Below, one piece after another: positions 5,831-32,868 of a stretch of DNA of 64,000 bases. Numbering within the stretch: position 1 is the first letter of the stretch; the number at the start of each line of letters is the position of its first letter. The stretch covers positions 248,001 to 312,000 of the forward strand of contig MCFH01000018.1 of NCBI GenBank assembly GCA_002104945.1. The letters are read 5' to 3'. The DNA is from Piromyces finnis finn. Taxonomy: Eukaryota > Fungi > Neocallimastigomycota. The notes beneath the pieces are model-generated. The model did no database searches. It was not told the DNA's origin and saw only the letters and a list, made by a program, of their open reading frames with translations. A program made the position numbers and the translations under genes.

Positions 5831-6735
5831 TTTTTAATATATAATAAAATTTGATTTTTGTTATTAAAAATTTTTTTTCTTTAGCGTCCTTATCTTTGGG
5901 ATTGTATTTATCATCCAGTGAAGTAATAACTGAGGCTGATTTATGCCATCACCAATACTACAACCAATTTAGAGAAGCGAATTGAGAAGTTCACTTCTAA
6001 TTTTTGGAACCTATTTATAGGTTATATTTAATGATAAAATGAATAAATTTGAACATTTAAAATTGATGAAAGTTTTAATATTTTAATATGGGAAATTGTT
6101 TTTAGTATTAAAATTATTTATAATATGGTTATATTGTTTTATATTAATTACAATAATTTAATGATTCTTTAGGCAAAAGGGTTTTGATTTTTTTTTATTT
6201 TTTACTTTTTGAAAAAGCTCAATTTTAATTTCTAGAATTTAAATTATGGGTTATTTAATGATAATTCTATTTTTATAGTAAGGATAAATTATTCTTTATT
6301 GTTTTTTTTTTCTTTTTAGTATGATCAAATATATAAGAAATAATATCATATCAATGAACCTACAAATAAATAAAATATGTTTATATTTTTTAATCTAATT
6401 ATAAATTCGACATATTTATGAAAAAGATAATAAATAAATAAAAATTAAAACATGAATCATATATGTAATATTTATTAATTCATTTTTAAGTGAGTTTAAA
6501 ATTATTAATATATTAAATAAATAATATTGTTACATACTATTTATTTATTTTTTTAAATATACATTGTATTATTTATTTCTTTATTACTTATTTATAATTT
6601 AATACTTATAATTTATATAGATATTTACTATAAATATGCTCAATTTTTTTTTTAATTACATGTAATTCTTATTTATGAATAATAATAAAAAATAAAAAGA
6701 TATAATAAATTTTTTTTCTTTATTTAATTGAACAT

Positions 6736-30226: not shown

Positions 30227-30906
30227 ATGGATGAAGATTACACCCTCGAAGATATGGGTGATAAGCAAACTCTCTTACAAGGGAAATCTTTTGAAGAAAA
30301 AAAAGTTGAAGAATTAAAACCTAATTTAAGAAAAGTAAATAAATAATTCTTCAATAAATTTATTTTTATAACTCTCCAAACAAATAAAAAACATAAGAAG
30401 AAAAAAATATAATTTTAACTTAAAAGTAATTTATTATGAAATTCTAATTATATTTTGTAATAAAATGATATATTATATCTGCACGCATAATAAAGGATAT
30501 ATGGGATTTTATATTGTTGGTAATATTATATTTCCTTCAAGGTATTCCACTAGGTTTAGCTTTAGGTTCATTACCATTTTTATTAAAATCCAAAATGACT
30601 TACAGTGATATGGCTATTTTTTCGATTACAAATTATCCATATTCTATGAAAGTAAATATTTTATTTTATTTAATCCAATTATTAAATCCTAAATTCAATT
30701 GAATTAACATATATTATCATAAATAATAATTATAATAATAAACCGAAATTTATTAAAATAGCTTCTTTGGTCACCTATTGTTGATTCCTTCTTCAATAAA
30801 AATATCCTTTTTATTAAATTAATATTAAATGTTTAATAATATATATAATTTTAAATTTATTTTTTGATTAAATCTTTAATTTATTATTTTAAAAATATTT
30901 AATATC

Positions 30907-30938
<32 letters not shown>

Positions 30939-32868
30939 CTTTTAATTTATTTATTTTTGTAATATACAATTTGGAAGACGTAAGAGTTGGATTGTTCCTA
31001 TTCAATTATGTTCTTCATTTTTTATGTTTTTCTTTGGAGGGATAATTAATGATAAAATGGATGAAAAAAAGATACCAATTGGTTTTATAACTGCATATTT
31101 CACTATAATGGTTATTTTGAGTGCAACTCAAGATATTGCATTAGATGGTATTTATATTTTATATTATTTTAATTTAGTTTGAATTTAATTAAGAAATTCT
31201 ATTAACAAATTTCTAATTAAATTTTTTAGGATGGGCACTTGAATTATTATCCAAAGGTAAAATAAATAATTAATTTTTTTCCAATATAAAGAATTGATTA
31301 TATTAAATAATTCCAAAATAAAAATAAAGAAAATCTTAGTTATGCTTCAACAGCTCAAACTGTTGGATTAAACACTGGTCAGTTTTTAAGTTCAACAGTA
31401 TTTTTAGCCTTTAACAGTGCAGAATTTAGTAATAAATATTTACGTTCAAAGCCATCTGAATATGGAGTACTTCAATTAGGACCATATTTAAAATTTTGGG
31501 CAGTATGTTATTTCCTTGTTACATTATATTTAATTGTAATCAAAAAAGAAAAGATCTGCTATGATGTTATTGAAAGTATAAAAGAAGTTTATAAAATCAT
31601 GTGGAAAGTTATAAAATTGCCAAGTAAATATATAGAAATAAAAAAAATCTAATATTAAATATAATTTAAAGATAATAAATTATCATATAAACTTATTACA
31701 AAATATTTATATATAACTTATCAATAATTTTAAATTAACAATAATTAAAATAAAATAATAATATTAATGCCAATTATACAAAAAGGAATGAGATCATTTA
31801 TTGTTCTTCTATTTATTGCAAAAATTGGATTTGTAACAAACGATGCTGTAACCTCATTAAAATTATTAGAAAAAGGATTTAAGAGAGAAGATTTATCAGT
31901 AACGGTATGTTTATCAATGTAGAAAATAACATTTTTCTTTATATTTAATAATAAAATTAAATTTTATTATATATGTAACATATCTTGAAAGGTTTTAATT
32001 GATTTCCCATTACAAATCATATTTGGTTATTATGCCGCAAAATGGAGTTCAGGAAAAAGACCCTTAAGACCTGTAAAATCACGCATTATAAATATAATTA
32101 TTTATAGTTTAATAGTATTAAGTATTAAATCATTGTATACTGAATTTAGTGGATGTGGGCTTTTTACGGTAGAATAGCAGCAGCTATATTAGCTATGTTT
32201 GTTGTAAAATTCTTTAGAATTCCTGAAAATGGTGAGATTTCATCAGGATACTTTATTTTAATTATTTTAAGTACTGTGTTATCATCATTTATGTCAACTG
32301 TACAATTTGTAAGCATTGGTTGTTTCTTTGCAAGAATTGCTGACCCAACAGTTGGTGGAACTTATATGACTTTATTAAATACTTTAAGTAATTTAGGTGG
32401 AAGTAAGTAAACAAAAATAGTAATAACAAAAATAATAGTTTTCATTATATTAAATAGTATATTAACATTATTATTTTTTAGCATGGCCAAGACCATTGAT
32501 TTTAGAAGGAGTGGATGTATTAACAGATTATGGAGAATGTCAAGGATTATCATCTGATATCCAAGGTATAATACTATTATAATTACATATTTTCGAGTAT
32601 AAATAATTATTAATATATTATATTTTGTAAATTTATTAAAAATATAGGTATAACATGTAAAACCTCTGATGGTAGACATGATTGTATATCAAATGGTGGC
32701 CAATGTGAAATTATATCAGATGGTTATTATAATATAAGTATAGTATGTATAATTTTAGCATTGCTTTCATTATTCTTATTTATCAAAAAAGAAGTAAGAA
32801 ATCTTGAAACAACACCAAAACATTATTGGGAAATTCCAAAAGATAAGGATGAAAAAGAAAAAGATTAA
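30227..32868 (+). CDS. SLC33A1: Acetyl-CoA transporter (SLC33A1/AT-1, MFS); 11 exons including one AT-AC intron
   Basis: LYFLQGIPLGL, YPYSMKLLWSPIVDS..FGRRKSWIVP, ATQDIALDGWALELL, YASTAQTVGLN, VGGTYMTLLNTLSNLGG and C..DGYY are present. Confidence 0.93.
30802..30967 (+). other. U12-type (minor spliceosome) AT-AC intron, 166 nt
   Basis: 5' end ATATCCTTT, 3' end ...AATATAC and a branch-like TTCTTTTAAT at ~30937-30946. Removal gives the in-frame sequence DSFFNK-K-FGRRKSW. Confidence 0.88.

Follow-up and report, generated by a model that had tools for sequence, protein, structure and literature searches.

A probable U12-type AT-AC intron with a distant candidate branch site in the acetyl-CoA transporter gene of the gut fungus Piromyces finnis

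The stretch of DNA analyzed here, referred to as the window, comprises 64,000 nucleotides (nt) of the Piromyces finnis genome, has a guanine-plus-cytosine (GC) content of about 18%, and holds an acetyl-CoA transporter gene with an unusual intron. The gene (30227..32868, forward strand, as are all of its parts described below) is assigned to the Acatn/SLC33A1 type on the basis of exon-by-exon matches to PF13000, which range from 1.5e-17 to 2.2e-28, and its product corresponds to the public protein ORX51411.1 of 520 amino acids. Six colinear pieces make up a full-length family match over PF13000 profile positions 2-546, and a profile search of the whole P. finnis assembly (56.46 megabases in 232 contigs) finds one Acatn gene copy. 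When compared with SLC33A1/AT-1, the acetyl-CoA transporter of the endoplasmic reticulum (ER), the P. finnis protein is colinear over its full length, carries the WSPIVD and FGRRKSW motifs at their universal 13-residue spacing, and has no unusual feature; its transporter role is predicted from sequence.

The exons around the intron in question are well defined. Exon 1 (30227..30334) has 36 codons, ends in phase 0, and is followed by a gtaaat donor, and exon 2 (30496..30651) has 52 codons and covers Acatn profile positions 2-52. Exon 3 (30762..30801) consists of LLWSPIVDSFFNK and one extra A, the first base of a split lysine codon, and exon 4 (30968..31147) supplies the AA that finishes this codon and then continues as FGRRKSW...DIALDG, covering profile positions 68-140. 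The 14 profile positions between exons 2 and 4 are accounted for exactly by exon 3 and the junction codon. Further downstream, exon 5 (31230..31256) encodes WALELLSK, exon 6 (31330..31623) covers profile positions 151-225, and exon 7 covers positions 282-319.

Between exons 3 and 4 lies an intron of 166 nt with 6% GC (30802..30967), inserted in phase 1, which begins with AT and ends with AC. Its 5' splice site, ATATCCTTT (30802..30810), matches the minor-intron consensus (A/G)UAUCCUUU (PMC8199999) at nine of nine positions, and the U12-type donor (A/G)TATCCTTT accordingly stands at the very first intron base. The terminal AC (30966..30967) is part of an AATATAC common to all three Neocallimastigomycete copies of the intron. 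Exon 4 opens AA TTT GGA AGA CGT AAG AGT TGG, so that the junction A|AA restores lysine and is followed by FGRRKSW. There is a one-base ambiguity in the placement of the intron, in that AT..AC at 30802-30967 and TA..CA at 30803-30968 yield identical mRNA.

The initial annotation had held that no GT-AG pair could join WSPIVDSFFNK to FGRRKSW, and this is borne out by the absence of any AG from 30762 to 30975. Within 30762-30990, GT occurs only at 30770, 30780, 30831, and 30959. As this same stretch has no GC donor and its first AG lies at 30976, no GT-AG or GC-AG intron can keep FGRRKSW, and reading through the unspliced exon 3 leads to a stop after 13 codons. The other introns of the gene are of the ordinary kind: the six other donors read all begin with GT (GTAAAT in four, GTAAAA and GTATTT in one each), and five of five control introns end with AG. 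The motif RTATCCTT is itself not enriched, with 6 matches in the window against 7.6 expected, and the significance of the donor therefore lies in the exact position of the motif and not in its mere presence. The other five copies, considered as possible intron starts, were rejected, as none stands at an exon end, all of them falling either within coding sequence or at a distance from exon boundaries.

That this junction is used is indicated by several comparisons. ORX51411.1, deposited as 'MFS general substrate transporter [Piromyces finnis]', reads NKKFGRRKSW, which is the product of the AT-AC junction. By string comparison, its first 268 residues are identical to exons 1-6, and the remaining exons match at 98.8-100%. 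A tblastn comparison of ORX51411.1 with the window gives 100% identity in cleanly bounded exons and lower values only where matches overrun into introns. As the public protein agrees with the predicted junction, the public gene model already has the AT-AC intron spliced out, and the earlier description of a U12-consensus start, an AC end, and an in-frame A|AA lysine holds for both the sequence and the public coding sequence. In addition, a scan of metagenomes with exon 4 identified two contigs, L005 and L006, which come from close relatives (~80% identity), lack introns, and resemble transcripts; their open reading frames of 484 and 517 amino acids are colinear with every window exon. Across the junction, L006 reads AATAAAAAATTTGGAAGACG, translated as NKKFGRRKSW, exactly as predicted, and a protein search with its reading frame retrieves ORX51411.1. 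The AT-AC junction results in a W-to-G spacing of 13 residues, which 117 of 120 homologous proteins share, and 65 of 80 metagenome loci show the equivalent uninterrupted spacing of 39 nt.

Taken together with the splicing machinery described below, these features make it very probable that 30802-30967 is a genuine U12-type intron, removed by the minor spliceosome, of the AT-AC kind and in phase 1 before the FGRRKSW codon. With known U12-type introns of animals, plants, and early-diverging fungi it shares the ATATCCTTT donor, the terminal AC, a non-zero phase, and a TCCTTAAY-like box, in a genome with U11, U12, U4atac, and U6atac; it differs from them in the 88 nt between its best box and the 3' end (relatives have 53-54 nt), in the run of 30 T that follows the box, and in the CC-variant U6atac of the genome.

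Searches of the whole P. finnis genome with Rfam models identified one locus for each of the minor-spliceosome small nuclear RNAs (snRNAs). U12 scores 66.6 bits (cut-off 53) with its branch-pairing GUAAGGA intact, and U6atac (L002:1501-1649, corresponding to G000:C112:211500-211648, + strand) scores 52.1 bits (cut-off 33), whereas U11 (38.2 bits, cut-off 39) and U4atac (RF00618, 49.2 bits, cut-off 53) fall short of their thresholds. The proposal that the fungus retains a minor spliceosome is thus upheld, with U12 and U6atac above the Rfam cut-offs and the other two close to them. Sm sites, together with the pairing of U4atac and U6atac, lend support to the sub-cut-off U11 and U4atac. The U4atac candidate is located in the window itself (5883..6011, + strand); a scan of the window at Rfam gathering thresholds returned nothing, this candidate included. 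It carries the Sm site AAUUUUUGG, and its 5' end is complementary to the U6atac of the genome at 16 of 18 positions. Stem II between U4atac and U6atac is calculated at -28.7 kcal/mol, against -8.5 kcal/mol for canonical U4 with U6atac, and canonical U4 is a separate locus elsewhere in the genome (89.9 bits). Given this strong pairing and the separate canonical U4, 5883-6011 is accepted as U4atac despite its score. The U4atac gene and the AT-AC intron thus sit in one 64,000-nt window.

The U6atac of P. finnis is of particular interest, as it reads GAGCCGAGAGA, with GCCGA for AAGGA, instead of the usual AAGGAGAGA. The GCCG box was considered as a new anomaly or the mark of a pseudogene, and this was rejected since a pattern search shows the gene to be single copy in the genome and the form is already published as the 'CC variant'. 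The variant ([GU]CCGA) has been described in Trichoplax, cnidarians, Acanthamoeba, Physarum, Physcomitrella, and oomycetes, and how such a U6atac pairs with the donor is a recognized puzzle (Lopez et al. 2008, PMC2396436). Both fungi named for this motif in that study, Rhizopus oryzae and Phycomyces blakesleeanus, have AAGGA, whereas P. finnis is a fungus with the CC form in its only U6atac, which still pairs with U4atac and U12. The AGC triad of this U6atac is GGC, and position 7 of U12 is C in place of U; the change in U12 may compensate for the altered triad.

Protein components were also sought. A homologue of CCDC84/CENATAC (PF14968), which in human cells is a minor-spliceosome factor linked to AT-AN introns, is represented in P. 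finnis by three colinear matches over the cut-off (L092-L094, G000:C112:739085-740745, - strand). The check on minor-specific proteins called for earlier gave a mixed outcome. A Ubiquitin_4 domain of the SNRNP25 type (PF18036) is present at 35 bits, above its cut-off, and a CHHC zinc finger of the U11-48K type, which would point to SNRNP48, is likewise present but is ambiguous among 48K, TRM13, and GTSF1.

If the intron follows the established minor pathway, a U11/U12 particle composed of two small nuclear ribonucleoproteins (snRNPs) would recognize the 5' splice site together with a TCCTTAAY-like branch box. U4atac/U6atac.U5 would then join and U4atac would depart, leaving U6atac and U12 to catalyze both splicing steps. 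We infer, by analogy, that these snRNPs would act on the present intron.

The intron position, whose comparison the initial annotation had suggested, is shared well beyond P. finnis. The same codon is interrupted in phase 1 by an AT-AC intron in the chytrid Polychytrium aggregatum (186 nt, ATATCCTTT...TCCTTGAC...AC), in the blastoclad Paraphysoderma sedebokerense (140 nt, ATATCCTTT...TCTTTAAC...AC), and in gut-fungus relatives. The latter are represented by genomic contigs from metagenomes (L113/L114; 113 nt, ATATCCTTTT...TTCCTTAAT...ATATAC) and by Piromyces sp. E2 (L112:700-1501, KZ150758.1), in which the 3' part of the intron follows an assembly gap and reads CCTTAAT, 27 T, and then AAATATAC. 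No intron is present at this codon in Spizellomyces, Batrachochytrium, Rhizophagus, Gigaspora, Rhizopus, and Basidiobolus. In two eukaryotic metagenome contigs, one with 55% GC (L050:344-480) and the other with 25% GC (L067:1398-1540), the same codon is interrupted in the same phase by an ordinary GT-AG intron. Five fungal genomes therefore have AT-AC at this site and phase, six other fungi have no intron there, and these two contigs have GT-AG. On this sequence comparison the AT-AC intron is apparently old, inherited from early fungi and shared over three fungal phyla, and the observed pattern would be expected of an ancient minor intron that was kept, lost, or converted according to lineage.

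The comparison also bears on how such genes are modelled. It had been anticipated that standard predictors would mis-model the gene, and this does not apply to P. finnis, for which ORX51411.1 is correct, or to Polychytrium, whose public model uses the AT-AC junction (FKSIGRRKSW). It does apply to the Paraphysoderma orthologue (GCA_025602915.1, L106:921-1120), where the public model P0052 places a GT..AG intron in the stead of ATATCCTTT...AC and reads ...SLYLNHILLRKSW (LNHILLRKSW), a junction that destroys the IGRRKSW motif. The partial model OUM69486.1 of Piromyces sp. E2 was considered as a further casualty of the AT-AC ends and rejected, as it is partial and starts at QFGRRKSW because a run of N lies inside the orthologous intron.

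The location of the branch site is less straightforward than the identity of the splice sites. Two candidates are separated by a run of 30 T (30909..30938), which resembles the 27 T of Piromyces sp. E2. The distal one, TCTTTAAT (30873..30880), has its branch A 88 nt from the 3' end and obtains the top score of the intron, 14, in the canonical pairing register against the U12 of the genome; motifs of this class are expected at 0.046 per 150 nt. The proximal one, CTTTTAAT (30939..30946), has its A 22 nt from the 3' end and scores 8, pairing with U12 only through G-U wobbles. The TTCTTTTAAT that had been noted ~22 nt upstream of the 3' end is thus present, with its second A at 22 nt, although as a branch site it is weaker than TCTTTAAT at 88 nt. 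In a MAFFT alignment, TCTTTAAT is aligned with TCCTTAAT of a relative's intron, 54 nt from the 3' end of that intron, and the branch box CCTTAAT of Piromyces sp. E2 lies 53 nt from its 3' end, while CTTTTAAT is without a clear counterpart in these relatives. On sequence alone, the orthologue comparison leads us to lean modestly towards the conserved distal box TCTTTAAT, rather than the proximal CTTTTAAT, as the somewhat likelier branch site.

It is conceivable, if somewhat doubtful, that the proximal CTTTTAAT is instead the functional branch of this minor intron and the distal box a relic. The distance of 22 nt resembles the 24 nt of the perfect TCCTTGAC in Polychytrium and the 26 nt of TACTTAAC in SPO11, it comes close to the 10-20 nt limit known for function (PMC8199999), and of the six Cs in the whole intron one falls in CTTTTAAT. 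Set against this are its wobble-only pairing with U12, with a score of 8 against 14, and the relatives, which have no comparable proximal box and keep TCCTTAAT or CCTTAAT at 53-54 nt. For the outgroups, branch-box distances are 24 nt in Polychytrium and 36 nt in Paraphysoderma. The SPO11 intron mentioned here is itself an AT-AC intron of P. finnis (L111, at ~982-1083 in the + coordinates of the locus, G000:C178, with the gene on the - strand), 102 nt long and in phase 1, which reads ATATCCTTTAC...TACTTAAC...AC with the box 26 nt from the 3' end.

A wider statement, for which we regard the chances as about even, is that Neocallimastigomycete minor introns may use far branch sites, at 88 nt here and at 53-54 nt in two relatives' copies of this intron, alongside a CC-variant U6atac. 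If true, this would break the 10-20 nt distance rule that is thought to be built into the choice of the U12-type 3' splice site. It would also mean that classifiers seeking a branch box only near the 3' end, as intronIC does by default, would under-score the introns of this clade, and it would make the fungus a natural system for the study of how the minor spliceosome gauges the distance from branch to 3' splice site.

The assignment to the minor type as a whole has to be weighed against several observations that speak against it. The canonical distance of the U12 branch from the 3' splice site is 10-20 nt (PMC8199999), and no TCCTTAAC-like branch box is found at 10-20 nt in the P. finnis intron. 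The run of 30 T precedes a 3' end at which minor introns are normally without a pyrimidine tract; the intron is, however, 63% T overall in DNA of ~18% GC, and the run may be compositional. With GCCGA, U6atac is unable to pair with the 5' splice site in the textbook manner, and the scores of U11 and U4atac are slightly below the Rfam cut-offs. A search of the genome for PDCD7 (PF16021) gave no match, which in the lack of a positive control is uninformative. Duplex energies with U12, U11, and U6atac do not separate the intron from its GT-AG neighbours in this AT-rich DNA, and they were dropped as evidence of minor type because they do not discriminate. Finally, transcript support is confined to the contigs of relatives and the public gene model.

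Some of these points could be accommodated if the intron were removed by the major (U2-type) spliceosome, as a member of the rare class with ATAAGT-like donors, in which case it would say nothing on minor splicing. AT-AC ends are not by themselves diagnostic of the minor type, and both the lack of a branch box at 10-20 nt and the long T run before the 3' end would fit removal by the major spliceosome. We nevertheless consider this very improbable, as the donor is a perfect ATATCCTTT and not GTRAGT-like, the same donor recurs across three fungal phyla, each time with a TCCTTRAY-like box, all other donors of the Acatn gene begin with GT, and the minor snRNAs are present in the genome. An artefact, whether mis-assembly, a pseudogene fragment, or two separate genes, might be suggested by a very AT-rich genome with long homopolymers and by the break of the E2 assembly inside this intron, but is hardly credible for a single-copy locus with intact exons that are colinear with the 517-520-residue proteins of relatives and with intron ends that are kept in independent assemblies and metagenomes.

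The intron is evidence for minor splicing in a gut fungus, as the initial annotation held, but that evidence is not new. Minor introns and snRNAs of P. finnis, and minor introns of Neocallimastix californiae, were reported by Larue and Roy (2023, PMC10639083), who used the same Rfam models, and a minor spliceosome in chytrids and zygomycetes was described by Lopez et al. (2008, PMC2396436). No paper was found that names the intron described here, and PMC10639083 contains no mention of 'SLC33A1'. With minor splicing in P. finnis already published and the AT-AC junction already in the public gene model, the principal assignment made here confirms a known fact and an existing annotation, and changes little.

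What the analysis contributes lies elsewhere. The AT-AC state across three early-diverging fungal phyla provides a clean marker for the loss or conversion of minor introns in fungi, and the comparison exposes one wrong public gene model, that of Paraphysoderma. It also offers an independent, orthology-backed case of gut-fungus introns whose consensus branch boxes are 50-90 nt away from the 3' splice site. This wide separation of branch box and 3' end, common to the gut-fungus copies, is the feature that merits further attention; if the distal branch is confirmed, it would be relevant to the choice of 3' splice site by the minor spliceosome.

As for physiological consequence, a retained intron would, judging from the reading frame, merely add 13 codons before a stop and yield a truncated protein. 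That minor splicing could rate-limit the import of acetyl-CoA into the ER is speculation, and none of the analyses made here supports it.

The GT-AG introns of L050 and L067 fit a conversion from U12 to U2 type or the reverse. Burge et al. (1998) are said to have described how introns at conserved positions convert from U12 to U2 type or disappear. The present site resembles such cases in being AT-AC, GT-AG, or empty according to lineage.

A further small RNA candidate, a C/D box small nucleolar RNA similar to SNORD14 (L003:2162-2325, - strand; 52 bits, cut-off 64), lies ~550 nt downstream of the U11 candidate.

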